The translations under genes were made by a program, and so were the position numbers. Under the pieces are notes generated by a model that saw only the letters and a list, made by a program, of their open reading frames with translations, did no database searches and was not told the DNA's origin. Shown one piece after another: positions 29,101 to 50,144 of a DNA stretch of 64,000 bases (positions within the stretch are counted from its first letter, which is position 1; each line of letters starts with the position of its first letter). Location of the stretch: NCBI GenBank assembly GCA_051294905.1, contig CM119384.1, positions 7,750,001 through 7,814,000 on the forward strand, written 5' to 3'. Origin of the DNA: Botryllus schlosseri (lineage: Eukaryota).

Positions 29101-32100
29101 CCGACGGCTGCTCCCCATGGAACTTTAACCGGTGGCCTGTGTAAATGGTGAAAATCGCGAGGGTACTTTCTGTAGATTTTGACATGTTCACATGAAATGT
29201 TGGTTGGCGATGGTCATGCAGCACACTGCTCGACGTGAATAATGAAGACACTACGCCCATGTCTGGCGTAGTTACACGTCTAGAAAATTTTCACCTTTTA
29301 GAATTTGAATTCGCAAAAACTTTGAACTTGAACTGATTTCTGAATTAGAAAGAAACACGACCAAAATAGAGTTTAGTTTGTATCAAATCATATAATTATC
29401 GATTTGTCTAATTCTGCTCTCCAGTCTTGTGCAGTGGCTGAAAATAACATGAATTCCAGGTATTTGTCGGAATCGCTAAAGGTGTCGTGAAAGGAGAGAC
29501 AAAAACGAGGGTGGCCATCAAGCAGCTGCACGACGGCGCCAGCATGAATATGAGGTGGGTGTAGCGGCCCAGCGATATCACCGCTGTTTCGCGCCAGCTA
29601 ATTTCTCCCCTTTCTCCTGCCAGATGCGACTTTTTGAAAGAAGCCGACATGATGAAGGCTTTTGAGGTCAGTCACGTCGTCCGCTTGCTGGGTGTCGTGT
29701 CCCAGGTGCCCAACCCGATGGTGCTTATGGAGTTTATGGCTAACGGGGACTTGAAGACTTATCTTCGGTTGCAACGCGAGGACGTCGAGGTAATTTTGAG
29801 TCGCTTTTGCGATTTCTGTTGCGTGGGGGTGGGTTTTGGGGGTTGAGAACCACTAGTCTAGAACGGTGCTCTTCAACCGGGGTTGTCGTACACCCTAGGG
29901 TGTACCAGAATTTGCAAAGGGTGTACCACTCGGATGGGGTGTACAGGGGTGTACCAGATCGGAATTACAATGAGCCGATGGCTAGCTATCACAAAGGCAG
30001 GTTTATGGGTCAGTACAGGTTGACGCACAGGTTAATGAGCAATATGGTACGATGTTATCTCAAGTGTAATACTTTACACCGCTTGATTGTGATGTCATAA
30101 GCAAATATTTCTTCTATTCATTTAGCCGTCGGCAATAGACCAATGGTTCCGTTTGGTGTTGGATAGTATGCAGTTAACAAACATGTGTTCCGCTAGTCAT
30201 TTGTCTTTTAGTGATTTTTTGAGGAAACCGCCGCGGTACCTCGGACTTTTTGAATCTGTACTTCCTACCCGACGTTAATATATACCGCAATGCAGCGAAG
30301 TGACGTAGCCAGCCAGGGTCGAAACAGTTTCCATGTTGAAATCGAAACCCTTTTGTTTTAAAATGCCAATGGTATGTCCAATATTTCGCCATACATTTGC
30401 AATTCAGTATTTTGTTATTAGTGATGTAAATTAGCGATAATAGACTGTGTATTGCGGCATACGATCTAAGGTTACTGACATCTCTTGCAGCCCATGTGCT
30501 ATTATCGACTGTGTGTGGTGTGGGAGAGGCTTGATACGCAGTAGGCTGGTGCGCCCGCTATCAGCGCTGATCTCAATTACCGCTTCTGCAGCAGTAGCTT
30601 TACCTACTCTCTCCCCAATACTGTTACATTTAGGTTGATTATCGTTCGTAATGTCATGCTGTTTTTGCTCTGACATGAAATAAATTCCAATTTGCGTGGC
30701 GGGGGGCCTAACTGGCTGCGAATAGACTCTGTGACCAAATACTATTTTATTCAAATCCAAATTTTTTGACGGCAATAACTCTGCTTCTACTGGTCTGAAT
30801 TGAACCAAATTTGAGGAACATCGTTTTTATAGACAAATTAATACTTTCATGGGGTGAACAGAAAAATTTCAAATTTTTCGTTATTTATCTTTATATAATA
30901 AATAGAAACTTTCTTCTCCCGTAGCAAGGCGGCTACTGGTTGGAATTGAACCAAATTTGGTGTGTAGGCTTAAGTTAGTTAACCTAACAATTTTATCAAG
31001 TAGCCAGTATGATTTCAGAAAAAAAGTCATTTTTGAAGACCTCTAATGAGCAGGGGTGTACGAGTTTTGAGCAAACGTTAAAAGGGTGTACCATGTCGAA
31101 AAAGGTTGAAGAGCACTGGTCTAGAAATTGTTACGTGCCAAATATGATAAATTTAATTATAATCGAAAGAACATGAAGTTGCCATGGCTCGATATCGACT
31201 ACCAAATTAGTTCCGGCATTAAAAGACAGCCACACCCGTAACAATTTGAGAAGCGGGATGAAGCACCTTTATCTCTCCGAGCCCAAAACCGCGGTTTTCA
31301 AGTCAAATTTCCACCGTAAACCTTTTCGCCCGTCTGTAATCGCAGGGCAAGCCTGTCGTGGTGGACCCGCTGAGCTTACAAACGAAACTGCAAATGGCCA
31401 CGGAAGTGGCGGACGGCATGCTGTACCTGTCCGATCGTAAGTTCATCCACCGCGACTTGGCCGCGAGAAACTGTCTGGTCAACGACGCGGGGACGGTGAA
31501 AATCGGAGACTTTGGGCTGGCGCGCGAGGTCTACGAATGTGACTACTACAGGAAGGAAAGCAGAGGTGAGACCGGTTTGTTGCATGCTTCCAGAGTATTT
31601 GAAGAGCTTCTCGGAAGTACAGAACTTCAATAAACAGTTGAATAGTATATTTATAGTGAAATAAAGCCGAATTATCTACTAGTTGCTGACGATTACCCCT
31701 AACGAGTTCATCCGAAATTATTCTTACGAATATGTTATTCAATTTTCGAGTATTCATCATCAGTGCTTGAGGAGAAATAGAAAAGAGTCCACAACTTGAA
31801 TCGCTAACTCTAGTTCTGCCCCCAAAAATTGTAGACTGTCAGGTGAAAGTAGTCAAACACCATAACAATTCGGCAAAATCAGCTTTAATGCTCTGGAAAG
31901 GTAGGACTTGGTCAATGATCAACTCTGCGTGCTGCTTCCGATGTTTTTCGTTGAATTTTTTATTTATTTGAAATTGGCGCAAAGGGAATTATAGTTTTTG
32001 AATTCCGAACGTGGGGAACAACAGTTCTTGAAGAACCTGGGGCGTAATCGCTGTCGGCCGATTACCTAATTTTCGAAAAATCTTGCAGGTTTTCTTCCGA

Positions 32101-34773
32101 TTCGCTGGATGGCGCCGGAGTCGCTGAAAGACGGGGTGTTCAACTCGAGGTCCGACGTCTGGTCGTACGGCATTGTCGTCTGGGAGATTGCGACCTTGGC
32201 GCAACAGCCTTACCAAGGCAAGCAGCACGACGAGGTCACGAGATTCGTCATCGACGGAGGGTACATGGAGAAGCCAAAAGATTGCCCGTCTAAATTGTGA
32301 GTCGCGTCGATACTCATCGTTACAGATAGACCCCGTCCCATGATATTAATTTCGAACTTGAATCCACGCGTGTTGCGTTGGCCCAGGCGAAATCAAGCAC
32401 CTGAGTGTTTTGGTTATGCTCAGCCCTAATTTCGCGTCGATTTATTGATCCGCATTTAAATAACCTCTGCAGATACAACATGATCAATTTCCATGTGCAT
32501 GAATAAACACAGCCCAAAGCTCCTATTTGTTCGATACAAACAGACTTGTAAAAACTGGTGTATTCATAACTAGAACTCCTCACTTTTTTCAATCCGCAAC
32601 AACTACAACTTTAATTACTGACTTTTAAAAATCTGCATCTAGAACTAGAACTACTCGCTTTCCGCAACTTCAACTAAAACTTTAAATACTCACTTTTCAA
32701 AATCTGCAAATGCTTTTACAACTTTTAATACACATTTTTAAAAACTACAACTAGAACTTTGAATACTCACTTTCAAAATCCGCAACTACAACTAGAACCA
32801 GAACTACTCGCTTTTCAAAATTCGCAACTGGAACTAGAACTACTCGAAAAACCGTTAGTTAGTTTACTGTCAAGTCTGTATATAAAGTATAGCTTAGCCC
32901 TGACCCTATCGCCGTCCCATAGCTACGGGCCTATGAATAAATGATCGACGATAGCGATTCAGCGTCCCAAATTAGCAAGACTATAACATCATTAAGAAAA
33001 CTTTCATAAAAACGTGATACACAGTGTAACCTGTACACGTACAGATACAACATAATCAGTTCAGTTTGTGTGATTAAACGCAGTCTACAACCGAGAGCCC
33101 CCGTCAACAAAACATGCAGTCGCGATTTCAATTGTGCCGTTCTATCCGCAGGTACGACCTCATGAAGATATGCTGGGAGTACAATCCGAGAATGAGGCCG
33201 GAATTTCGGGAGCTGGTGAACTTGCTGCTGCGTGAAGGTGAAGTCAACAACCAATTCCTGGAAATCAGCTACTATGGAAACGAAGATCAATTGTACGTAG
33301 CACTGCGCTTTTCTTGTTCTGATTGAGTTAAGTTCTCTAGTAGATTTTGTCTCCTTGTACTGCTTACTTGAGCGGTTACGGTTATAAACTGTTTCCGCCT
33401 CGACTGTTCTTGAAGCTTGGTTTTTGTAGAGTAGAGAGTAGTATTTGCATATATTCAGAGCAGTGGCTCCAAAACTTATCAAGCCTGGGATATCCTATCC
33501 CCCCTTAAAAGCTAGAGGTCATCAGTAACAAAGCGCTTGTAAGTTTACATACTACTCAAGTAGATTTAGTCCACTTGTTTTGCTGACTGAAGTCGTTTTT
33601 GCTTCAACAGTCAACAGCTCGTGATGCTGAAATACTAATTTTGCATACTGAGCGATGATAGCAAAATGAAAGTCATTATATTATTCGCTCTAATTACTTT
33701 TCTCTGAGTTAAGTTGATGCAAGATAGCGTAGTGGAGCGTCCGGCTTCTTGATCGGTAGGTCATGTGTTTGAAATCCCTGACTGGGTCAGACCAAAGATA
33801 TGATTGGTTTCCGTGGGTACACCGCTTAGCGCTCTGCATTGTCAGGATAGCATGGAGGGGCGGTGCAAGAGTTATAAGCCTTACAAGGCTATATCTGCAC
33901 CTTCCTCGTCCAACGGCACATGGTATGCATATGTACAGATCGTGTGTGTGTAGTGTGTGTGTATCATGAGCCAGTGTATATGCCGCAAAAACATCAAGGA
34001 CAAAAATTTATAACGTCCTATTCCTGCGATATAGACAAAATTTCGATGACCTTGAACTAAAAACACCAAGATCGTCAATGGCTTTTTTTGGATCCCAGAA
34101 AACTAGTCCGCAGAATACTCAGTTAAAATCAATTTTCATTTGCAGTCCGATCCGCAGCCACCCGCCGATGCAGACGGGACATACCTACTCGGAACACATG
34201 GACGCATCATACGCGTGCGACGACCCAGGGACATCCCCAATACCGTCCCAGCCCAACGGCATCGGCATCAACGGCAACGACTATTACCGAAACCAAAACT
34301 CAAATCACCAGCCCGGCACGCCAGAGACCCGGCCCCTGATCCCGCTCGAACGGGAGAGCGCCGAGGCCCCGTGCAACGACGAGAGGTCCATGAACACAAT
34401 GTCGACCACTGCACCCCGGTCTCCACTACCGGGGCTGTCCCGGTCTTCGAGAGAGAATGAATACGGCAGCGATAGCTCCTATGAAAATGAGTCTGATGAG
34501 AGCTTGTCAAGAGGCGGGTATGTCAGCGCTAGAGACTCTGGGACTTTTGTGAGAAGCGAACGGGATGCTGCCCCGGTCAGGCACAAGAATCGTGCCGGGC
34601 GGCGGAAATCCAAGTCTTACGAGTACGATCTCGAGTCTGGGCTAGGGGAGAACATGTGCGACAACTCTACGTCGCACAGTAGCGCGTCCACGCCCACCGA
34701 GTCCCACGGATTGCTGCCATTCGACAGGCGGGACACGGGTCATGTGCTGCACACGGCGTCGACCACGTGCTGA
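17010..34773 (+). CDS. INSR: Insulin/IGF-1 receptor family tyrosine kinase (5'-partial; 25 exons, about 1345 aa in window)
   Basis: Exons 17010-17182, 19012-19171, 19244-19345, 20334-20475, 20870-21072, 21316-21448, 22125-22178, 23065-23309, 23636-23806, 24964-25049, 25162-25271, 25424-25483, 25867-25925, 25991-26105, 26864-27104, 27410-27499, 28112-28250, 28376-28526, 28875-29019, 29460-29554, 29624-29789, 31346-31565, 32089-32296, 33152-33292, 34146-34773. All GT-AG with consistent phases (4037 nt plus 1 split base). Domains: Cys-rich, L2, FnIII x3, alphaCT ([10 protein letters not shown]), RKKR/SL cleavage site, TM, NPDY, kinase ([27 protein letters not shown]). Confidence 0.96.
17330..17508. 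mobile_element. Partial copy (right end) of the GACTCG-array MITE
   Basis: Ends GGTTACAACCCTG; GACTTGGACTCG repeats as at 62320-62475. Confidence 0.7.
18420..18930. mobile_element. Degenerate near-full copy of the GACTCG-array MITE
   Basis: GACTCGACTCGAGTCA arrays at both ends with an AT-rich middle, similar to 61997-62475. Confidence 0.7.
19012..19171 (+). CDS. INSR: INSR exon, Cys-rich domain
   Basis: ttcag|[32 protein letters not shown]|gtgggt. Confidence 0.92.
19244..19345 (+). CDS. INSR: INSR exon, start of L2
   Basis: [33 protein letters not shown]; AG/GT flanks. Confidence 0.92.
20334..20475 (+). CDS. INSR: INSR exon, L2
   Basis: [30 protein letters not shown]; AG/GT flanks. Confidence 0.92.
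20870..21072 (+). CDS. INSR: INSR exon, L2 end
   Basis: [25 protein letters not shown]. Confidence 0.93.
21316..21448 (+). CDS. INSR: INSR exon, FnIII-1
   Basis: [24 protein letters not shown]. Confidence 0.93.
22125..22178 (+). CDS. INSR: INSR exon, FnIII-1 (alpha-alpha Cys)
   Basis: [12 protein letters not shown], compare DACGSNSW. Confidence 0.92.
23065..23309 (+). CDS. INSR: INSR exon, FnIII-1
   Basis: [27 protein letters not shown]. Confidence 0.92.
23636..23806 (+). CDS. INSR: INSR exon, FnIII-2a
   Basis: [33 protein letters not shown]. Confidence 0.93.
23950..24560. mobile_element. Foldback/MITE with long imperfect inverted arms
   Basis: GTACTGGCTACTTGATAAAAT (about 23986) inverts to ATTTTATCAAGTAGCCAGTAC (about 24518-24538). 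Related arms at about 30720-31040 and 55965-56170. Confidence 0.7.
24964..25049 (+). CDS. INSR: INSR exon, insert domain
   Basis: ctgcag|[29 protein letters not shown]|gtcggt; phases 1/0 fit neighbours. Confidence 0.8.
25162..25271 (+). CDS. INSR: INSR exon, Cys cluster and alphaCT
   Basis: [24 protein letters not shown]|gtaagt. Confidence 0.93.
25424..25483 (+). CDS. INSR: INSR 60-nt symmetric exon (candidate cassette, exon-11 position)
   Basis: cttctgtattcag|[21 protein letters not shown]|gtaagt; phase 2/2; completes R-K-K-R with the next exon. Confidence 0.8.
25867..25925 (+). CDS. INSR: INSR exon, alpha/beta cleavage site
   Basis: ttacag|[19 protein letters not shown]|gtgagt. Confidence 0.9.
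25991..26105 (+). CDS. INSR: INSR exon, beta N-terminus
   Basis: [30 protein letters not shown]|gtaggt; alternative in-frame acceptor ending 25996. Confidence 0.85.
26864..27104 (+). CDS. INSR: INSR exon, FnIII-2b
   Basis: [29 protein letters not shown]. Confidence 0.92.
27410..27499 (+). CDS. INSR: INSR exon, FnIII-3
   Basis: [24 protein letters not shown]. Confidence 0.9.
27858..27958 (+). repeat. Imperfect (AACAC/AACAT)n microsatellite
   Basis: aacacataacaaacacaacacataacataacacaacac... Confidence 0.85.
28112..28250 (+). CDS. INSR: INSR exon, FnIII-3
   Basis: [25 protein letters not shown]. Confidence 0.9.
28376..28526 (+). CDS. INSR: INSR exon, transmembrane helix
   Basis: [27 protein letters not shown]. 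Confidence 0.93.
28875..29019 (+). CDS. INSR: INSR exon, juxtamembrane NPxY and Gly loop
   Basis: [25 protein letters not shown]. Confidence 0.94.
29460..29554 (+). CDS. INSR: INSR exon, kinase N-lobe
   Basis: [21 protein letters not shown]. Confidence 0.94.
29624..29789 (+). CDS. INSR: INSR exon, kinase
   Basis: [33 protein letters not shown]. Confidence 0.95.
29864..31118. mobile_element. Non-autonomous hAT (Charlie-like) element in INSR intron
   Basis: TIRs CGGTGCTCTTCAACC / GGTTGAAGAGCACTG; perfect 8-bp TSD GTCTAGAA; reiterated subterminal GGGTGTAC. Confidence 0.85.
31346..31565 (+). CDS. INSR: INSR exon, catalytic and activation loops
   Basis: [37 protein letters not shown]. Confidence 0.96.
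32089..32296 (+). CDS. INSR: INSR exon, kinase C-lobe
   Basis: [39 protein letters not shown]. Confidence 0.96.
32541..32878. mobile_element. hAT-type MITE with internal tandem CTAGAACTACTC/CCGCAAC units
   Basis: TIRs CAGACTTG / CAAGTCTG; TSD GATACAAA vs TATATAAA (6/8). Related inverted, interrupted copy at about 9531-10068. Confidence 0.65.
33152..33292 (+). CDS. INSR: INSR exon, kinase end
   Basis: [25 protein letters not shown]. Confidence 0.94.
33720..34010 (+). mobile_element. tRNA-derived SINE (central domain resembles MetaSINE as recalled)
   Basis: A-box-like TAGCGTAGTGG, B-box-like GTTTGAAATCC, then GGGTCAGACCAAAGA..ATTGGT..CCGCTTAGCGC..GCATT; TG-repeat tail. Confidence 0.55.
34146..34773 (+). 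CDS. INSR: INSR terminal exon, long C-tail ending ASTTC*
   Basis: ttttcatttgcag acceptor, phase 2 (alternative in-phase acceptor ending 34157); open to TGA at 34771-34773. Confidence 0.85.
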
Positions 34774-36649
34774 CCCTGTTCAGGCTGGTGTTCCCGGTAA
34801 ATTATTTGTTTTTGAAGGCGATGGGAACACACTGTGCTATTCATATCTCTACCCGCGCCGGAAGGTGGTGATACACGGGTTGACTTTGTCATGTGACAAG
34901 TTACAGGAGCCCCGCCCTGGAACCGTGTGGTTTACCTCGCGAAAAAACGTATTGCATAAACAGTTATACACTTCCTCCCGGCGGGTTGACTACCATTACT
35001 TTACGGCCTGGCCGAATTGTATTCTGCGGGCCCTACCTCATCAAGGCTACAAGCCCCATGGGCCAGTCATCCCGGATCGCATGCACTTTTTCTTTTCATT
35101 ACGGAGTATCGACCACAAGACGAGAGCCTTTGGCACGCTATGGGCTTGTACGGTGTACACTGTACAGTTCCCGTGGAATAGTTTGAAAATGGCAATATCG
35201 GCTCGTTTTTTAGGCTGTTGCGTGTCTCTGGCGGCGATACACTGCTCTAAATGACTGATGCTGGGCAAAATCTAAGTACATAGGTGATTTGATTCGGTAT
35301 TGAGTATTTATCTTCGAGTCGAATGTCTGACTATCACTAATTATGTTCAGCCCCTTAAATAACGATGACGCATTTTTGGTGTGACTGTAAACTATGGATG
35401 CGCCTTTACCGGTGCGTATAATTCCACAAGCAAAATTCTACTTTATTTAAATTCCTCCGACTAAGACGACGGCCTACTGTTGATCGCATTCTGTGAAACG
35501 CCTGGTCGATGCATGCATGCAAATTTCGCCGACAGCATTCTCTCACACTTACTCTGCCACGCCTTACCGAAAAGGGCCTCCTTTTTAGCGTTTTCCGTTC
35601 CGATGGTTTCATACTGTTTCGAAAAGTTCCCTCGATTATTTTTCTTTAAGCTCGTTTTGGCGCCATTTTTTACGCTGCCTTGTGACGTGTGTGTGCACGG
35701 CTTTCTCTCACCCATGGCCTCCATTATAATCCCTTGGTTCATTTCTAATCGTACACGGTGCCGTGTTTATCGTTTGGAACGCCCCGATTATTATTATTCG
35801 CGTGACAGTATTTGTCTGCATACAACTCAAACGCGTTTTGATCATTGTAAATTTCAGTTTCATTCTGTTAATTGTATCGCGATTGAATTGTAAATCGGTG
35901 TTGAATTCAAACGTGATGCCATCATCTCAGATATGATCCCGCTTTTAAAAACTTGCCGAATCGCGTCGGCGATACAATTGCGCGTTACGCGGTAACGCAA
36001 ACCAGCCCCGTCTTCTGCGTCGCTAAGATACGTATTTTTATTTTCGTAGCGGAACGTTTGCTGACATTCGTCGGAATGTGTTTGAGACACTTTATTCGGT
36101 TTCGGTTGCTCATTTTCCTTATTGTTTTTATTATATTTATTTTAATTACCGCTTTCTATTTTGTAACTACAAAACTATCGATGGATTAGTGGGCTCGGCC
36201 ACGTTGTTGACACACTCATCCAATCTCACGCCAGCACTGAACAGCTGTTACCAACCGCGGTAACTAACCCTCGTGTGGGATTCCTTTCGAGGCTGCTATC
36301 GTCAAATTTCCACTTTTTTTTTTACATCGAATATGCTGCTCACTATTATTTTCATTTCTTCATCCGTGCTGTAGGAGGTGATCTCGATAATACGGTCCCG
36401 ACCCAATGGCCACACTTGGACGGCTAGATGCTTTTAATATCAATTACACTAATTAGGGGGAAATGCCCAGTAATTTAATTTTTTGCCGTTTGCCATTCTC
36501 ATTTATATAAGAATGAATTCTGATTTATTATGAACTGACCTTAATTTCTGTTGTATTTCTTCCAAGTTTTTTCGAATTCAGTAATTCTGATTCTAATCTA
36601 ATTCTGAAAAGCTGAAAATGTTCTAGTTGTCCAAGTATGGTCCAAACCC

Positions 36650-36657
36650 AATAAAGC
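36650..36657 (+). terminator. Candidate polyadenylation signal for INSR
   Basis: First AATAAA I noticed downstream of the stop, about 1.9 kb away; not verified. Confidence 0.25.
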
Positions 36658-37388
36658 AACCAAAATCTGCGTCTGTAGTTCATTCTGTCGCGTAACACCG
36701 AAAAAAATTCTATTATCTGATTTTGTTTGAAGTCTCACAAAACGGTGCTTCGTTTGGTGCTCAAAACTCCGTGAAACACAGAATGTGACGTAAGCAGCTG
36801 GTCCTGGGGACTTCCGTGACTCGGGGCCGCGTTTCGAGGCTCTGGTGATATCTTTTTTTCGGTCATGTCCGCTTCATGTTTTATCTATGTTATGTGTTTT
36901 AATCTGATGCTTTTCTTCCTTTCTCTCTTTAGTTGTATTGGTCGCTTACCTTCGTATTGTAAACTTTAATACACGACGAATGCGGCGTGATTGCGTTTGG
37001 TTTTGACTGTTGATTGACGGAGTAGCTACGATTTTCTGGGCCTGGTTAACTACGTGTTAACTACGTTAGGGGTAGTGTGGTTTACGAGCACATATTTCAG
37101 GTGGTCAGTGGTCACGTTACAGACATTAGTGATTTAAAAGTCATGTCAGCAAATCATATTAGCAGACTTGGATGGGCGAAATCGCGTGTTGATTCTGGGA
37201 TATCTATAACTAGTTTTATATTTGGGTCTGACGAAAGCGATTGCTGTCTTTGCTAGCTTCCAGGCTGAGCCTCGTTAGGTTACCAAGGCAGCGAAGAGGT
37301 CATCAAGTAGCGTTATGCTCGGTTCAAAACTGGAAACTCTGCGGCGGGTGAATGCAGTAGATGAGGTTGTGAGATTGGTGGTATTTTG

Positions 37389-39078
37389 CAGAGGTGGTCA
37401 AAGTAGTCAAGAAAGCTACTCAAGTAGAAGTAGAAGTAGCGACGAAAAAATCTACTCAAGTACGAGTAGAAGTACTTCTTCCGTAAGCAACCTAAACTAC
37501 TTGAAGTAGAAGTAGAATTTACTGACTTTAAAAGTACTCAAGTAAGTAAGTAGTTGTGAAGACGATCCTAATTCGTTCACATGGATTGTAAAAAGGTGCA
37601 AATTGAGCTATGCGAAAGGTGACGAGCTTGATTCATATTGATGCATACCAGCAGGTATCCAATTTTCGATAGCATAATCATTCGTCAACATCATGGGATG
37701 AAAATGATAGTATTGATATGGAAATGCGATACTAATCCTCTGTTTTCTCGAACAGCACGTTTTATAAAATAGCTTGGTACGGCACCATCCCCCATATTAT
37801 AAGGCCCATAGTTTAGTCGAAGAGCAATACGGAGAAGTGATATAGGATACGGTGGAAACACTTCGCGCGATTAGTAAATGTTAATAGAAAATATGGTGGA
37901 CCGTAAAAATGCCATATCGTGTAGCTTTATTTCCGAAAATTAAAGGCATTATAATACACTTGCTTTTATACTTCAACATGTATGTTATCCAGACAGAGCT
38001 GATATTAATTATAACTCAAAGTATATGATACTGGGAGATAGCAGGGGAGATAGTGTAGTGGTTACGATAAGCGCCCAGCACGCAGGCAAACCGCGCTCGA
38101 TTCCCGTCGGAGGTTTATCTGGGCTCCTCTTCCCCTGCCGTTGCCGTTCTTACGGCGACAAAAAAGCCCTGAAAAAAGACCCGACGAAAGAAAGCACTCA
38201 CAAAGAATGGAAAAAAACTAGTGGAAAGGGCCGCGGCTTCAAAATCGATCAACATCGAAAAAGAACTGTGACATCGGGCACCTAGGCCGAGGTGGATGTT
38301 AGAGTAAAGGATCGCTACTGATGCGTGTCGTTCTACACCCTCCTATCTGTTCATGACATCGCATTGTGTCTTATCGCATTGTACATTGTGTGTGACTTGT
38401 TCAGATAAAAATATAACCCAACCATGTTATGTTATGTTATGTTACTGGGAATTAAAAGTGAAATATAAATACTGCTTCTGAAAGCGGAACATGTATTTCA
38501 TACCTTTAGTCCAGAAATTTTTCAAAGGTGGTACGCTAAAACAGCTCTAAAACTAAAAAAAAAGTCGGAGACCACTATTCCAGATTAGGACACGCCATGG
38601 ACGGACATGCTAGATTACGATATGACAAGTAACATCAGTTTCGAACGTTATTATGAGCCATATATACTGTGATGAATTATTTCATATGGGCGAAGGGCGA
38701 CAATGTGGTGTGAACGGAACCACGCCAACTCGCCACCTAAATTATATTCACCGATACTTTCGTGGAATCATACCGGACAATCCGTATCCACTGCGCGCGA
38801 AGCGCGACGAAAATTCTTGGCTTTATAACAATTAAATGTTGATACTGATACGTGAAAACAGCCACGAAATTTCTCAGGTTATCTTCCTGATTGAAAGATT
38901 GAACTACTTCTACTTGACAAACTGAAAATAGCGAAAAGTAAGTAAGTAGATCACAAAATATTACGAAGTAGAAGTAGAAGTAGCGAAAATCAGATCTACT
39001 TGAGTAAGTACCAGAAGTAGAGGAAAACTACTTGAGTACTTCTAAAAAGTAGAAGTACTTCGTTACTGACCACCTCTG
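37389..39078. mobile_element. Non-autonomous hAT-type element (1690 bp)
   Basis: TIRs CAGAGGTGGTCA / TGACCACCTCTG; perfect 8-bp TSD GTATTTTG; AGTAGA-rich subtermini. Fragments of the family near 10835-10872, 20748-20790, 21495-21620, 33515-33570. Confidence 0.88.
38035..38330 (+). mobile_element. tRNA(Ala-like)-derived SINE inside the 37389-39078 element
   Basis: GGGGAGATAGTGTAGTGGTTA..CCCAGCACGC..GCTCGATTCCCG head with degenerate A/B boxes; not a canonical cloverleaf; 3' boundary approximate. Confidence 0.45.
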
Positions 39079-39634
39079 GTATTTTGCTATCCTCGTCCGA
39101 TACCGTCGCACGCGACGGAACATGGACCCATCACGTTGTAGTGAAAGGTGGACCACGTAGTTAGTTAGGGATACCAAATGCCCTTGTAAGAGGGTTTGTC
39201 TTATATTTTCAATAAAACAAAAATGTTCGCCCGAATTGGCGTGGGTGTCTGATTTCAAAGACTACTCCCAAGTCATCTCGATACCTTCCTATCTTTTCAA
39301 TATATCCCAAATTTTGTGGCGTATTGAACTGATAAAATTGCTAATAAACCGAACCGAACGGCCTCTTTTTCGCAATCGGCCGTCTTTTTGATTTGAGTGA
39401 TAGGCGAATATATGGAGACGACTTAAAAGGTCAATTCGCCACAAAGTACACGTTCAAACAGGCTTTTTCTAGAACTGACGCGGAAGTTGACAAAATTTTG
39501 TTAAAAAGGTTAACCCAACGGAAGCTGTTCGTGGAAAACCGGACCGGCGTACTCGATATGCGAGCCTAGTATGGCGTGATTTTGGAATGCAGGCCTGTAT
39601 TATGTACCTAATATTAGGTCGTTGAACTCTATAC

Positions 39635-40905
39635 TAGGGATGGTGTGAACCTCAGAAAGGTTCAGGTTCGTGTGAACGCGAACGTGAACCTCATGACGTC
39701 ACGTGACGTCATTTTTCTAATTCCAACCCTACATTTCAGTGAAGTGATATATATCTATTAATTAGAGAATTACTATACGTCCTCTTTTAAGAGGATTTGT
39801 CCTCTTTGTTGACTTTTTTTAAAGTGTCCTCTTTTTTGAGAATGTAGGTCATATTTATAGCAAAATGCGACTGAAATGCGTAAATCAGCACCGAAGTGAC
39901 GCTCCGGCGGGTATTTCGGGAGCTTGGCGGAAAGTTGGCCTTTTTTTTAGTCAACCGACCACAAAGTGAGAAAAATTTACCGTTTTTTTAGAATTCTTCT
40001 CCGGTTTTGCAATTCTGAAAAAGTGTCCTATTTTCAGTTTTCTAAAATATGGTAACCCTATCATTAATGTACAACAGGATACCTAGCGACGACTCGGGTC
40101 ACATTATGCCACAATGCTGAAGTGCATACTGACTTTTAAGCGTCGCTTATTATATATCAACTGCTGGAGCAATTAAATGATATAATAATCCCATAAAATC
40201 AATACCTTCCGTCGCTTTGCCAACAATTTCGACGAAGACTGGAAAGGGAATATAAGCTTACGCCTTAACGGTCGAGGTCAGACCAGAGTATTGCTACATT
40301 GTTATTGAGCAGAGTGTAAAAGGGTTTCTATACTTGCTACCGACATTATCGCATTAACAAGTTATACAGGTGTAGCTAACACCCCAATCACACAGATTTG
40401 TCTTTTATGATACAATAAACACATCAAATCAAGATGGTCCCCGTACGCCTGCTAGATTTTGACAGAACAACGATGTATTCTTTTATATGAATTTCACTGA
40501 TTGGTTGAATAAGCATCATTCGCTGACTATACTGTTGCGTATTCCGCTCTTGATATTATGTGATTGCTGGTCAAGCTCACAGCAGAGAGTCACTAGATAT
40601 TTACAAACGGAAAACTGGATATTTAGAGCAAACTTTTGTAACAAAGGAAGTAAAATCTTTGTGATGGTCAAGGTGCATGCTCGTTTAGTGTTGATTCTTT
40701 CATGCTGCCAGCATCATGCATAGAGTGGCCCGCAGTTGAAATGCTATGGATTTTAACCAACAATGTTATAATGACGTGGAAAATTGTAATATATGAAAAG
40801 TTTCACAGTGCAGAACCTACCAAGGTTCGTTTGTGAACGTGAACCTCTAAATTTCTGAGGTTCACACACAGAACGCGAACGTGAACCTCACGTTCACACC
40901 ATACT
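39635..40905. mobile_element. hAT-type non-autonomous element with TAGGGATG terminus
   Basis: Left TAGGGATGGTGTGAAC, right GTTCACACCATACT; GTGAAC/GTTCAC arrays at both ends; TSD degenerate (about 6/8). Confidence 0.65.
39763..40060. mobile_element. Nested hAT (Blackjack-like) MITE
   Basis: Right end ATATGGTAACCCTA, left TAGAGAATTACTATACGTCC; GTCCTC repeats; TSD CTATTAAT vs TCATTAAT (6/8). Confidence 0.6.
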
Positions 40906-41011
40906 CGCAATACCTGCCCTGTCAAGTTATTGGCAGTGCATCTCTTCTCGCGTCGCGATGGTGCGAATCTGAGTGTTACTGCGGTTATATTTTGGTAATT
41001 CGATATTGTAA

Positions 41012-42453
41012 TCATATGATCGAAAAAATGACGCCATAACAAAGAAGACACAAACAAAATATTCCATATTCTTGCGCATACTGTCGGGCACCTCTGCTCG
41101 TCTCTTTTATTGAAGATAATTGATATGGAAGCATGATCGTTGGGCACCTGCTTTCCAATGACGGGTCACGATATGCCATGCCTGTTTCCGACTTGCCGAG
41201 GTTGTCGATGGAATCAATTGCGATATCATAAGATATTTGCAGCGGTCCGTTGCTGGGACAATTCGTTAACACTATGTGCCACGTGTTTTCAACCCATGTG
41301 CTTTCTTCTGGGTTTCTGTCTGTTTTAGGATCTGCCTCCCCACCGTACCAAGATTCAGTCAGAGTCATGTTCGGAAGAGACACTTTTTCCATTAGTTTGA
41401 TATTGCCTTCGCACATTTTATAGGACTTGCCATTATTTCCAATCGTTATCGATCCTTTTTGACACAGCTTCACCACCTGAAAGGTACAGGTCATTTTTCC
41501 AACACTGTATTATGAGTTTCACGAAGCCTGTTGATATGCTCATTGCTCATGCTCATGTTCATGTTCACTCATTGTTCAGTCAGAATAAGCAAATTTGCGG
41601 TCGCAATCATGCAGTTGAGGAACTGCTTTCATCAAGTTACATGACCATCATTCCTACAAGAGGTAGAATATATCTGCCGCGTTTAGCTTGATTGGCGATT
41701 ATAGTTGCAGTAGAGCTGTATATAAATTGACTTCACTTCATAATCATTGTAGCGGCGATCCCATAATTGCAGGGATAAGCTATGTTGTCAAACCCGCATG
41801 AAGGCGCAAATTAATCCGATAGCAATGATATCAGGAAGTCTTTATGATTTGTTACCTTCTTATTAAGTGCCATGAATGATAGCCATCAGATGGACATTTG
41901 CTGGTCTTGTTACTATAGCAGCAGTTTCGTATCGTAACTGACAACGTACCCAGTTTCCTACATGAATAAAAGAGACCTACCTATTTACCTGAGACTCGTC
42001 GAGCACTTGCATACGACTCTTCTTAACTTGAGCACACGAGTATGTCCGCTCCAATTTAGTTTGCGCTCTGCTCATGAGATCATCTTCAGTATCGTGCAAC
42101 CTTTTAATGATGTCAATTGCAGAATAATTTTTCTTTCGTTCACCTGTCTTCGCGAATCCTATGCGCGATTTTGCATTGAACATGTCGATAGTTTCTTGGT
42201 AAACCAGCGTTTGATATTGTCGATCGCTATAAAGCAGTAGTTTTGGACAGCAGCCTCGGTCTGCGTTGTACACGATACGGTAGCTCAAAGTCAGATTTCT
42301 CTTCATGCATACTGTGCCTATTCGACTCCATAGTAGCCGGCTCACCGACGTCGATTCAAAATATGATATTTTTTCAGAAAAGGCCGCCGGAGTGATCACA
42401 TGAAGAAGAAACACGCCGGTCAACAGAAATGAATGCCACTTTATCGTTTCCAT
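41012..42453 (-). CDS. TMEM145-like GOLD-domain protein lacking the 7TM region; signal peptide plus C-terminal hydrophobic anchor (309 aa, 2 exons)
   Basis: Exons 42453-41989 and 41476-41012 (phase 0; CAG|gtaaat ... ctttcag|). Signal-like METIKWHSFLLTGVFLLHVITPAAFS. Matches to TMEM145 as recalled: LSYRIVYNADRGCCPKLLLYSD vs [27 protein letters not shown] vs NQVINL; WHIVLTNCPSNGPLQISYDI vs WYIALSKCGGDGLQLEYEM; QYAQEYGIF vs HFSADEFGIL. Ends IFCLCLLCYGVIFSII*. Confidence 0.72.
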
Positions 42454-44910
42454 ACCGTTTTCCAAGTTCGAAGGTGCGAGATCGGTTGATGTAACAATAT
42501 GTAGTTGGCTCCTCCAATCGTACAATCTCAATTCAAGGTATCAAAGGTAGTACAGCATGGATACTTCTTTGCGGATTACTCTACAGATTTCGCTCGCCGT
42601 GAAGTGCTAGCTATAGGTATTATAATGGCCACCTTCATATGTCTACTTTTTCAATCATCCTAGCTACAGTATCTAAAGAAAAATGCTTGTAGACTAAAAT
42701 ATGAACCGGCCGTTGAGTAAATCCAACAGCTGTCGCCTTTTTTGTTGTATTGATTACGGATACCCCGCCCCAAACAATCCTCTGTGCTATCAGTAACATT
42801 CGAGTCCTGAATTCTGCATCCTTTGTAGTTCCGAGCACTTCATCGTGCACCAATAAAAATAGACTCGCAAAGGTTGAACTGCAATTTAATTCGGTCGTTT
42901 GTAGCGATTATACTTTTTGCGCAAATGCGCAAGTATCATTTGTGGCCGTGGGCTATGCACAAAACGCCAATATGGTCAGAGCTGCAATTCGTCTTTCACC
43001 CGAGGAGCAAAACCAAGGAAAACCCATTGCAACAAATACGGTGCCAATTGAGGACATTGCAATGTACGTTGAGAGTACTGTGAATGGTCCACTCCACGAA
43101 ACACTTTTATTCTTTAGGCCAGTGATATTAGGCAGCACCCCATTGACCTGTGATCATCGTAATGATCGTATATAGAGACAATTTAGCGTAATACTACTGA
43201 TCGTTGGCCTGTGCACACTACACATAACAATATAGGACTAAACGTAAACAAATAGATACAGATTACAAAGGCAATCTCGCGAAGTATAAAATTTTGCTAC
43301 GAGACCTACATTCAGTTATATCAGATTTGTGCACTGTTCTGTAAGTGGAACATATTGATGCAAGGCACTTATGTACTGTACAGGGTACACACATGTCATA
43401 GAGAGATAATTATGAATATCAGGTATGAGAATCACCTCTGACCCTGAAATGAAATATTTTAGCGGATTGTTGATCACATGTTCGGTGTACCAATCTCAAG
43501 AACCTCCGAGCCTATTTTGAATTGACGCAGGCAAACCCTTCCTCCGCCTGCTTGCGTATATATTATATAAGTACACGTTCACCATTGAACTCATCGTGAA
43601 ATTTGCATGATATAAGTTGTTGTTTTATAATTCATGGCGTCTCGACATTGATGGTCACTGGTCAGTATTTTACACCTGGCCGATATTCTTTAGTTTGTTT
43701 CCTGATCTGTCGACTTGGAGCACGGCCCACCGTACTCTATAATCCACGATGCTAAATTGCTAATCAACACTCCTTGTCTGCACAATGTGCGGGTCACATG
43801 CTAGAATCACGGAATCTTTATTTCGCAATTGAAATTACGCCGTTCTACATGAAGCGCGAAACACTGAAACACGTCTAGACTCATAAATAGCAATGAGAAA
43901 CGGAAAATATTTCATGAAACTATATGTAAACATCACAGTATAGGCCTGAAGTCACAAAAGACAATATAATCTCAAAATGCAAGAAGCGGTCGACAACATT
44001 TTATGAGAAATATCTTCCGCCGACTGTTCGCACAGTGAATTTAAAGAAGTCGAGTTAGTATTACAAAAATATTGATGCTCTCGCTGATTTTGTTCGGTAA
44101 TGGTAACATTGCGGCATGCAAGGGAGATCGACAAAGCGAGGGGGTCTTTCGATGCGATCTCTTAAGTTCAATCACGCTGCGTCATAATAAAGTCGCAAAC
44201 ATTTAATATAAAGTGATAGCACAGCAGACTGGCCGAACAGGTGATGAAATATTCCGGGAAATGAATCACAAGCGATTTGGTTTCGAATTTGTAATCGGAT
44301 TCGCAGCAATTAGTTCGTCATGCTTCCGCTTTCCACGGCGATAGCGTAAATTGAATATTCAAATATGTTACTAAAAGCGATAAAAGGAAATCATTATCCA
44401 GCCTACGCACGATGACATCGTATATTTCAGATAAGATCTGATCCGATCTCAAAGTAGATCCGGGTGGCAATAATGCAATTCGTCCGCGTTGCTGTTTATA
44501 CCAAAAAAAAATAAGCCGAGAAGCAACTGATTTTGGCACTGAATGAGATAACTGCGAAGAATGTCGTCGCTGTACATGAAAGGCGTCTTTGAAAAAGATA
44601 TACGAGCTAACGGAAACCGGAGAATGCGATGGATCCTGTTTTGTCATAAACGTATGTCTGGAATCCTCATAAAGTCGCGCGGAAGATGATATCTCTCCGC
44701 GCCTACAACTTATTTGCACTAGAAGCGCGGGAATATCACTTCGCAACACATAGATAATGACGCCGGAAGATTATCCGGAGCACTAGCTTAAAATGTATCT
44801 ACTTCAGCAGTGCGTGGATGTGATCCCGACTCTTGTGACGCATTTATATAATCTCCATGAATCCACGGATCAGTCTGCGAGCATATGAGTTCTTCCGATA
44901 TCCCGTCAGC

Positions 44911-48671: not shown

Positions 48672-50144
48672 TTACCCGCGATTGTGAATAGAGAAGTCAG
48701 CATTCGATCGTCCGCGCGTTTGAGTTCTGTTTTCCGGTTGAGGGTGCCTGTTTTGAGCAGGATCGGCACTTTCGTGTCTTCTAACTGCTCTGTTATATGT
48801 CCTAACCGGTCGCTTCCCGTTTACTTTCGGCGGACGCGGCATCGCTCGCCTGATACGCGACATGGCTACAGGCAGTTGTTGCGTGCCAACTGTCACTAAG
48901 CTTGGAGTTGTGAAACCGGCTACGCTGCCGTGTCTAAGGCGATGCCGACCAACGGTCACTGTGTCTCTAGTCTTCGGTTTATCCTGCGTTCTCGACGAGG
49001 AACTCGGATACAAAGCGCAATCCGGATCCGTCTTGTTCTGAGGACCTTCTGACTTGCACGAGTCTGCCTCAGAAGGCTCGTTACGCGATGGCGGGTGAGT
49101 CGCTAGGCTGTTTTGCACCAGCCTGTGGTTGTTTCTTATCAAGACCGTCGCGTCTATGATATCCTGGCTGGTGCAGCTGCCTGGAGGTGGTTTTCGCACC
49201 GTGGCTGGCTCAGAAGACGCGCCTGACTTCTTGCCGGACATGATCTGCGCTTGAATTTCGAGATTCGTGGCAGAGTGTGGTCTCGGGCAGAGATTTATGG
49301 AGCTAGTCGACGGGAGCGACGCGAACGACGGGTTGTTAGAAGCGTCGAGCCGCTGATGACACGGTATCGGCAGTACCTTACGGGTAACCCCTGGTCTTTT
49401 CAGCGGTTTTGCCGATTCGGATTTGTGATAAGGAGCGGTGAGAGGGTTTCTACTCTCTCGCACAGGCCAGATGGAGTTGTATTTTGATATCGATTTGCTT
49501 GGTTTACTGGTAGGCCTGTGCCATCGGTTGATGTTAACTTTGACAGAACTGGAAGCGGTTTGGGGATGGATATAATTGAGTGATGAAGAATTCGAGACAG
49601 CGTCACCGTCTGTGCTTCTCGGAGGCCCGTTGTTCCATTGAAAGCTGACTTGCGAGCGAGGTAGTTTGTGCGCGGACGGCGGTTTGGTTGGCGGCAAAGG
49701 CGCGTAACTCTGCCCTAAGAGCCTACCGAATCCGTTCTGCGACCTGGAAGCGCTCTGCCTGCTGCCTCCGTTGATATTCCTAGCGGCGCTAGGTATCATC
49801 ATACAAAATAACCCGTCGGACGCGCCGCTGCCTCTCAATAAGTAAGGGTTTTTACGGGTACGCTGATCGTTGCTCGCTTTCGAGCCTAGCCTCCACACTC
49901 TAAGCCCTGAATTGCAGTTCTGCGTTGTGCTGTGAGCTGATATCTCTAGCCTCAAATCGCCTGACGACACCCCCGGTCCTGATATGTACTGCTGCTTGGG
50001 CCTCTCTAAATTTCTCTGACCCTGGTAAAAGTCGAATATCGGCGAGCCCACGGGCCTCGACAGATAGCTTGTGAAGTTTCCGCGGTGTGACAGCCCGCCG
50101 TAGTTCAGCGAGTCACCGTGCAACGCGGCCTGGTACCAGCTGGC
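48672..50144 (-). CDS. TTLL6: TTLL6 large terminal exon (490 aa, S/P/R-rich, likely disordered)
   Basis: taattttcag| acceptor in phase 0; single open frame of 1473 nt to TAA. Confidence 0.75.
   Translation of the reverse strand, partial: ASWYQAALHGDSLNYGGLSHRGNFTSYLSRPVGSPIFDFYQGQRNLERPKQQYISGPGVSSGDLRLEISAHSTTQNCNSGLRVWRLGSKASNDQRTRKNPYLLRGSGASDGLFCMMIPSAARNINGGSRQSASRSQNGFGRLLGQSYAPLPPTKPPSAHKLPRSQVSFQWNNGPPRSTDGDAVSNSSSLNYIHPQTASSSVKVNINRWHRPTSKPSKSISKYNSIWPVRESRNPLTAPYHKSESAKPLKRPGVTRKVLPIPCHQRLDASNNPSFASLPSTSSINLCPRPHSATNLEIQAQIMSGKKSGASSEPATVRKPPPGSCTSQDIIDATVLIRNNHRLVQNSLATHPPSRNEPSEADSCKSEGPQNKTDPDCALYPSSSSRTQDKPKTRDTVTVGRHRLRHGSVAGFTTPSLVTVGTQQLPVAMSRIRRAMPRPPKVNGKRPVRTYNRAVRRHESADPAQNRHPQPENRTQTRGRSNADFSIHNRG

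Follow-up and report, generated by a model that had tools for sequence, protein, structure and literature searches.

Can the GOLD domain of a TMEM145/GPR180-type protein exist as a gene product of its own, tethered to a membrane by its C-terminus and without the seven-transmembrane (7TM) domain that follows it in those proteins? This question is raised by a two-exon gene on the minus strand of a 64,000-nucleotide (nt) stretch of the Botryllus schlosseri genome (GenBank assembly GCA_051294905.1, contig CM119384.1, positions 7,750,001 to 7,814,000), which is called the window here and corresponds to C14:7750001-7814000 of the 495-Mb genome; positions given without a contig or locus name are those of the window. 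GOST proteins, the group that includes TMEM145 and GPR180, are poorly understood, the respective roles of their GOLD and 7TM domains are debated, and to our knowledge most of their ligands are unknown. A sequence-only reading of the window had proposed that the gene encodes a TMEM145/GPR180-type GOLD ectodomain as a stand-alone, C-terminally anchored protein. Transcripts, orthologs, the absence of 7TM exons, a separate canonical gene and fold searches bear out the core of that proposal: with a probability of roughly 0.72, the locus is a functional single-copy two-exon gene, the product of which is a GOLD-only protein of the secretory pathway that is held by a C-terminal tether, likely a glycosylphosphatidylinositol (GPI) anchor, and serves as a binding module.

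The coding part of exon 1 (42453..41989, minus strand) starts with the ATG at 42453, comprises 155 codons (residues 1-155) for a predicted signal peptide, the first GOLD strands with a CC..LLLY motif and a helical insert, and ends in phase 0 at the donor CAG|GTAAAT. A GT..AG intron of 512 nt (41477..41988, minus strand) separates it from the coding part of exon 2 (41476..41012, minus strand), which begins behind the acceptor TTTCAG|, comprises 154 codons (residues 156-309) and is closed by the TGA at 41014..41012. Joined in phase 0, the two exons read as a protein of 309 residues. Four public runs from the same organism were placed on 37000-42900, two of which, X1 and X3, come from different studies. 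The intron is spliced out in one contig of each (640 nt in X1 and 991 nt in X3), with the contig joint at 41474>41987 (cut +2) and 255 nt on its shorter side, and the depth is zero inside the intron and about 5-7 over the exons. The X3 contig extends 126 nt upstream of the ATG and is colinear with the genome up to 42579, which gives the 5' untranslated region (UTR) a minimum extent of 42454..42579 (minus strand). Exon 2 is covered by the X1 and X3 contigs over 41083-41474, the former ending at 41143 and the latter at 41083. Searches of the B. schlosseri genome with both exons and with two relatives described below, P0002 and P0005, return the locus itself as the sole match; C10:25641417 (E 0.25) and C9:11435857 (E 0.08) were considered as paralogs or retrocopies and rejected as matches at noise level. 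Since neither exon has a second genomic copy, the spliced form must be RNA and not a retrocopy. The gene is single-copy, and it is transcribed and spliced, the exact exon junction being present in contigs from two independent studies. Reading frame, splice sites and spliced transcript contigs thus agree on the intact open reading frame (ORF) of 309 residues that had been read from the letters of the window.

Relatives of the gene are few. Word-indexed searches led to P0001-P0004, and an exhaustive profile search over 1.84 billion representative proteins returned eight proteins, seven of them true family members; the remaining one, the Calx-beta protein P0009, is an unrelated chance match of the profile search and was rejected. 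Since there are only 7 true matches among 1.84 billion representatives, the family is tiny. P0002 has 298 residues and derives from the 1357-nt cDNA-like contig L012, which contains a 5' UTR, 298 uninterrupted codons, a 3' UTR of about 400 nt and a sequencing adapter at its end; the junction ...DPSQ|VVNLCP... of P0002 lies at the predicted exon boundary. A third species is represented by L013, a genomic contig of 6.1 kb, in which the intron has the ends GTAAGT..CCAG and exon 2 stops one residue past the hydrophobic tail. The sole named family member is P0005 (RefSeq XP_039251902, 'uncharacterized protein LOC120329361 [Styela clava]'), which has 417 residues and ends with ...ISVFALFFTTLFFF. P0006, P0007 and P0008 are fragments with the same kind of end. 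Hence an ortholog cDNA, a genomic ortholog and the Styela model all end directly after the tail, as expected for a stand-alone architecture, and the tail is the end of the protein in every species where the end is readable. The Logan sample SRR25569784, the source of P0001, P0003 and P0006, contains both a close relative (84% identity in exon 1) and a member of the more distant P0002-like branch (43%), which means either a pair of paralogs in that organism or a mixed sample.

The 7TM part was searched for in the window, in the ortholog and in the whole genome. A genome-wide six-frame scan with PF10192 (GPR180-TMEM145_TM) matches only C11:12249733-12253371, and matches to PF21892 lie just upstream, at C11:12257163-12265678, together marking a canonical TMEM145/GPR180-type GOLD+7TM gene on the minus strand of C11:12249733-12265678 (loci L014 and L015). 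The N-domain exons of this separate full-length gene contain '...EKCCYNILLYTD...', '...CADKESVLRPENHEVINLT...' and '...RERWWYIAISNC...'; the likely exon for the first transmembrane segment (TM1) lies at L014:7719-7847, that for the second at L014:7392-7529, and more 7TM exons extend down to L014:1733. When the canonical 7TM exons were compared with the window and with L013 by tblastn, nothing rose above noise; the same search places no 7TM exon in the 4.7 kb downstream of the gene in L013, and phmmer of one canonical 7TM exon against the PDB gave no match. On the minus strand of 34774-41011, between the gene and the convergent INSR-like gene, only one transmembrane-like piece was detected, within a high-copy repeat, while the canonical locus used as a control gave seven. 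The PF10192 scan, tblastn and the hydrophobicity scan thus agree with the earlier statement that no 7TM exons are present up to the INSR-like gene. The hallmark of GOST proteins, a 7TM domain directly after GOLD, is absent from the window protein, the ORF of which ends 14 residues into its only hydrophobic stretch.

The ORF could still be the 5' part of a longer GOST gene if it were spliced from a donor within exon 2, CA|GTATGC (41081|41080), to remote 7TM exons. No transcript contig of Botryllus schlosseri covers the final 71 nt of the ORF (41012-41082), which counts against a protein ending at the tail, and the X3 contig ends at 41083, two bases from the candidate donor. However, this contig stops two bases short of the junction, where a junction branch would end at or beyond it, and with a depth of 7 contig ends are to be expected anywhere, as at 41143 for X1. 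The ortholog cDNA L012 runs through the homologous point, leaving the donor unused there, and continues into the tail, the stop codon and the 400-nt UTR, and L013 and the Styela model have the same end. Nor is there a 7TM exon in the 6.2 kb before the INSR-like gene, in the 4.7 kb downstream in L013 or in the genome outside C11. Remote splicing is therefore largely refuted and has next to no likelihood left, and the ORF is taken as a complete, GOLD-only coding sequence.

The identity of the domain was approached by profiles, motifs and fold comparisons, for which the exons were searched separately and the full-length ortholog P0002 stood in for the joined 309-residue protein. Pfam TMEM145_N (PF21892) is the top family for window exon 1 (14.9 bits, E 0.035, residues 42-89) and also for P0001, P0002, P0003 and P0005, the orthologs scoring 14.4-17 bits and P0005 giving the best match (26.3 bits, E 9.9e-6). 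Profile positions 10-60 are matched at the N-terminal motif and positions 102-131 at the C-terminal motif (in the P0007 fragment), so that the two part-matches follow each other in order and are colinear, the match being split because of the long insert. All family members have CC..[IL]LLY.D followed by W.I.[LI].NC, and both motifs align to the canonical N-domain exons of the same genome, as KCCYNILLYTD and WWYIAISNC. In a search with a hidden Markov model (HMM) of the family, the canonical '...EKCCYNILLYTD...' exon is the best of 662 six-frame pieces, with an E value of 0.033 as against a best value of 0.54 in three control regions, and the WWYIAISNC exon is also matched, in the right order. 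The ten best family-bearing neighbours by ESM features are all GOST N-domain clusters, with a weak score of 0.81.

The predicted fold points in the same direction. A first AlphaFold run with a 5-row alignment gave a predicted local distance difference test score (pLDDT) of 38 and was unusable, and an AlphaFold2 model of P0002 was built from a 10-row alignment of family members only, without TMEM145. This model (pLDDT 55, predicted template modelling score 0.52) contains about nine strands, a helical insert at residues 74-132 and a C-terminal helix, and with this moderate model quality it shows the N-terminal, luminal or extracellular GOLD beta-sandwich expected of the group. Foldseek places the mouse and Xenopus TMEM145 N-domains first among 550,129 models of reviewed proteins (E 4e-5 and 8e-5), with human TMEM145, GPR107 and p24 proteins lower in the same list. 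Among 2.3 million AFDB clusters, the first three places go to N-domains of the GPR180-like/TMEM145 type (E 7e-6 to 1e-5), and the VIA PDB fold search also puts TMEM145/GPR180 N-domains on top. The fold matches further include collagenase collagen-binding domains, calpain and p24 GOLD, and the crystal structure of GPR180 has the same fold neighbours (PMC11605061). Each GOST GOLD core is known to bear its own variable helices (PMC11605061).

Several results weigh against a TMEM145/GPR180-type GOLD domain. All family members stay below the 28.1 bits at which PF21892 has its gathering cut-off, and a search with exon 2 by itself gives no Pfam match; the proposed profile similarity thus stands in so far as TMEM145_N is always the top family, and falls short in its score. 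Canonical TMEM145/GPR180 was found neither by the exhaustive profile search nor by the PDB sequence search, and because the exhaustive search gave no canonical TMEM145, homology is not demonstrable by sequence profile alone. The AlphaFold2 model is of moderate quality (pLDDT 55) and is that of a 298-residue ortholog about 50% identical to the window protein, and Foldseek against the PDB gave nothing at an E value of 0.001 or better, with generic jelly rolls first and GPR180 (9FOW) at rank 50. These low Pfam scores and leading jelly rolls would also fit another disulfide-rich beta-sandwich, such as an immunoglobulin V (Ig-V)-like domain, with the TMEM145 likeness being convergent or due to chance, and the best PDB sequence matches of the family profile are indeed V-kappa light chains, through '..TC....Y...G..PKLLIYS' (E 0.4-0.9). 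The Ig-V reading was rejected, because the V-kappa matches are non-significant and no fold search supports it, and a sandwich of some other class as a whole is very improbable. At 42229-42310 (residues 48-75), the pattern ...TVCMKR..L.Y.I.Y....GCCPKLLLYSD resembles the first framework, first complementarity-determining and second framework regions of V-kappa (...TITCRAS...Y..WYQQKPGKAPKLLIYS), a likeness that at E 0.4-0.9 is taken as chance. With TMEM145 N-domains ranking first in the AlphaFold and Foldseek comparison, the domain is very probably a GOLD domain of the TMEM145/GPR180 type, as judged from the model.

The conservation of the gene was assessed between species and between alleles. 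For one ortholog pair, L012/L013, pN is 0.17, pS is 0.54, dS is 0.94 and the ratio of non-synonymous to synonymous substitution rates (dN/dS) is 0.20, which clearly indicates long-term purifying selection. Within B. schlosseri, the X1 and X3 contigs carry largely the same alternative allele, which differs from the window at positions within 41113-42442. Among its 14 listed coding differences, 12 are non-synonymous and 2 are synonymous; neutrality predicts 78% non-synonymous changes, and the allele pair looks neutral. Of the 12 changes, most are located in the predicted signal peptide, in the stalk or in the insert, with K51E and S57R just before the CC motif, and none of them is in a cysteine or a motif. 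Expression is low, two deep raw RNA-seq runs showing stray reads only. The allele differences and the low expression speak against a functional gene and would suit a decaying relic in this species, open and weakly transcribed after selection has gone, and a hand estimate puts the probability of so many non-synonymous changes under a dN/dS of 0.2 at ~1e-3. Such decay is nevertheless highly improbable: the ORF is open in both alleles and correctly spliced, all eight cysteines and both motifs are retained and spared by the 12 changes, exon 1 is likewise open in the relative with 84% identity in that exon, and the long-term dN/dS is 0.20. The 12:2 pattern, which comes from one allele pair and is unusual where orthologs have a dN/dS of 0.20, is read here as relaxed constraint on the variable parts.

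How the protein may be held at the membrane depends on its C-terminus. A classical GPI signal consists of small omega/omega+2 residues, a polar spacer and a hydrophobic tail at the C-terminus. By eye, all 7 of 7 C-termini of the family have this layout, with a cluster of G, S or A, a polar spacer that is 2 residues long in P0006 and 6-8 residues long in the other six, and 14-20 hydrophobic residues. The hydrophobic run reaches the C-terminus in the window protein, the Styela protein and P0007, and stops one residue short of it in L013, P0006 and P0008. In the window protein, the small-residue cluster S-R-G-A (residues 282-285; 41087..41098, minus strand), identified by eye, is the candidate omega region, and the translation ends in the hydrophobic tail GIFCLCLLCYGVIFSII (residues 293-309; 41015..41065, minus strand), which extends up to the stop codon. 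QYAQEYGIF is followed there by 14 hydrophobic residues and the stop codon, with no residue beyond the tail. The tail is probably a GPI-attachment signal, a prediction made from these C-terminal sequences.

Alternatively, the tail may be an uncleaved single-pass transmembrane anchor of a type I protein without a cytosolic tail, possibly a TM1 remnant of an ancestral GOST gene. In P0002 the hydrophobic stretch is followed by 7 polar residues, an arrangement less usual for a GPI signal, and the last residues of L013 and P0006 are R and N. Moreover, the tail sits where TM1 follows GOLD in canonical proteins, and G-I-[LF] is common to the tail and the canonical TM1 exon '...VTGILEMNIVFF...'. However, the hydrophobic runs, of 14-17 residues in most members, are short, and those of P0007 and of the window and Styela proteins extend to the last residue; a small-residue cluster and a polar spacer precede all tails in the classical GPI layout. 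The canonical TM1 exon ('...VTGILEMNIVFFVAC...', L014:7719-7847) shares little beyond G-I-[LF] with the tail, a likeness no better than generic hydrophobicity, and the earlier alignment of QYAQEYGIF with the segment before TM1 proves too weak to make the tail a TM1 remnant. Another candidate for a TM1 counterpart of the tail, L014:5962-6066, was rejected, since it is a weak profile match and not a transmembrane segment. A transmembrane anchor is therefore possible but the less likely form of the tether, and GPI attachment is preferred.

The remaining features fit a protein of the secretory pathway. The N-terminus of the window protein is signal-peptide-like (METIKWHSFLLTGVFLLHVITPAAFS, residues 1-26, ...PAAFS|EK; 42376..42453, minus strand, as read from the sequence), with a hydrophobic stretch and an A-x-S-type site, and the N-terminus is hydrophobic by eye in all full-length relatives. 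The CCPKLLLY motif (residues 68-75; 42229..42252, minus strand) is unchanged or almost unchanged in every relative covering it, one of which has LLMY, and the WHIVLTNC motif (residues 221-228; 41258..41281, minus strand) is kept in all relatives. Behind the CC motif lies a variable, mostly helical insert (about residues 81-137; 42043..42213, minus strand), which differs in length between relatives and corresponds to the helices at 74-132 of the ortholog model. The sequon NMT (residues 191-193, LPNxT; 41363..41371, minus strand) is conserved as LPN[HLMR]T in 5 of the 6 relatives that cover it, and there are two other sequons, NLT (residues 53-55) and NYS (residues 109-111). Eight cysteines are conserved across the family alignment, and because of them an extracytosolic, oxidising location fits. 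In the same alignment, the last strand is joined to the tail by a conserved segment, some 45 residues long and including '...CP.I.LP...'. The signal-like N-terminus, both motifs, the three sequons, the terminal hydrophobic stretch without a cytosolic tail and the extra insertions in the domain had all been pointed out from the sequence, and all of them are present, the insertions as the variable insert after the CC motif.

These features lead to a plausible model of the protein. A signal peptide at the N-terminus would direct the protein into the secretory pathway, where it would fold into a divergent TMEM145/GPR180-type GOLD beta-sandwich stabilised by the eight conserved cysteines. The domain would carry a helical insert that varies between lineages and a single conserved site for an N-glycan, and it would be followed by a conserved, Cys-containing stalk of about 45 residues. 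The 17-residue tail would be cleaved off and a GPI anchor added, so that its C-terminus would keep the protein on the outer or luminal side of the membrane, with neither a seven-helix domain nor a cytosolic part. In TMEM145, stereocilin is still bound by a construct lacking the 7TM part (delta-7TM), and tubby is the partner of the 7TM part (PMC12789471). By analogy with the GOLD part of TMEM145, which binds stereocilin on its own, the window protein most likely works as a tethered module that binds a luminal or extracellular partner, without the contribution of a 7TM domain. It is rather doubtful that the family, as a small and fast-evolving group, has made the GOLD domain into a GPI-anchored decoy or co-receptor that would compete or cooperate with the canonical receptor for one partner, in which case the 12:2 excess would reflect diversifying selection on a recognition surface.

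The surroundings of the gene are dominated by repeats. High-copy DNA begins at about 40902-40939, some 75-110 nt after the stop codon (40743..40939, outside the gene), where the summed contig depth jumps from 0-7 to >16,000 and loose ends of X3 pile up at 40902. Most of the 3.5 kb downstream (37394-40939) is high-copy repeat with a summed depth of thousands to tens of thousands and many chimeric joints, and a short palindromic GTGAACGTGAGGTTCACGTTC... element is located at 40860-40905. At 37985-38575, the RNA-seq depth is 450-600x in both raw runs and in both orientations, and many reads have a template-switch-oligo-like sequence (...GTGGTATCAACGCAGAGTACATGGGG) just before 38041/38044; such read starts suggest that this segment contains abundant transcript 5' ends of a repeat family. 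Rfam finds nothing in 37000-43000, and Pfam finds nothing in the neighbouring ORFs, including that at 38025-38285. Farther away, 48672-50123 (minus strand) is an open frame of 483 codons that matches no Pfam family and lies where the GC content of the window is highest (GC 0.50). The convergent INSR-like gene on the plus strand (31358-34773), with tyrosine-kinase exons and a long Ser/Pro-rich C-terminal exon (34078-34773), ends about 6.2 kb from the stop codon of the GOLD gene.

A conserved, expressed GOLD-only protein on a tether amounts to a natural evolutionary 'delta-7TM' experiment. It suggests that a TMEM145-type GOLD domain can act as an autonomous binding module, as it does in the TMEM145 deletion construct, and it offers a small, soluble-face bait for partner discovery. 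The significance is tempered by the tiny, lineage-restricted family and the low expression, and domain-only receptor paralogs are a common evolutionary theme. The searched literature describes GOST proteins as GOLD directly followed by 7TM and contains no GPI-anchored or 7TM-less GOST derivative. The suggestion that such a form had not been known before is in keeping with this silence, but the Styela clava member had already been predicted in RefSeq, as an uncharacterized protein.

Among known proteins, those of the p24/TMED (emp24) family likewise tether a luminal GOLD domain to the membrane through one hydrophobic segment at the C-terminus and are weaker fold matches. They have a coiled-coil between GOLD and the transmembrane segment and a cytosolic tail with COPI/COPII motifs, whereas the window protein has neither; the window exons and their relatives give no EMP24_GP25L Pfam match, and their motifs are of the TMEM145 type. 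Three AFDB entries named 'GPR180-like N-terminal domain-containing protein', A0A7J7J5Y7 (232 residues), A0A2C9KZ72 (261 residues) and A0A267FGZ8 (273 residues), are the best structural matches and have domain-only lengths, a comparison by fold and length in which the entries may be fragmentary GOST gene models. Since the sequence profile missed them, they are not close relatives of the family. Styela clava LOC120329361, on which no study was found, is laid out like the window protein, from a predicted signal peptide through the CC motif, the insert and the second half to a hydrophobic C-terminus, and is 39-42% identical to the window exons, and it differs in being a computer prediction only and in having a central insert about 130 residues longer.

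The closest known system is that of TMEM145 and GPR180 (PF21892 and PF10192), which likewise have a GOLD-type sandwich decorated with helices, behind a signal peptide that is predicted for the window protein too, and the same CC-x-x-[IL]LLY-x-D and W-x-I-x-[LI]-[ST]-N-C motifs, and which are the top matches in the fold and Pfam searches. Unlike them, the window protein has no 7TM domain and no cytosolic part. Its CC motif is followed by an insert, which is 50 to ~180 residues long across the family, there are additional cysteines, eight being conserved altogether, and a conserved stalk of some 45 residues leads to a tail that resembles a GPI signal. Since the defining 7TM domain was tested for and is absent, the protein is not a GOST protein in the strict sense and is most aptly called a domain-only derivative of the TMEM145/GPR180 branch.

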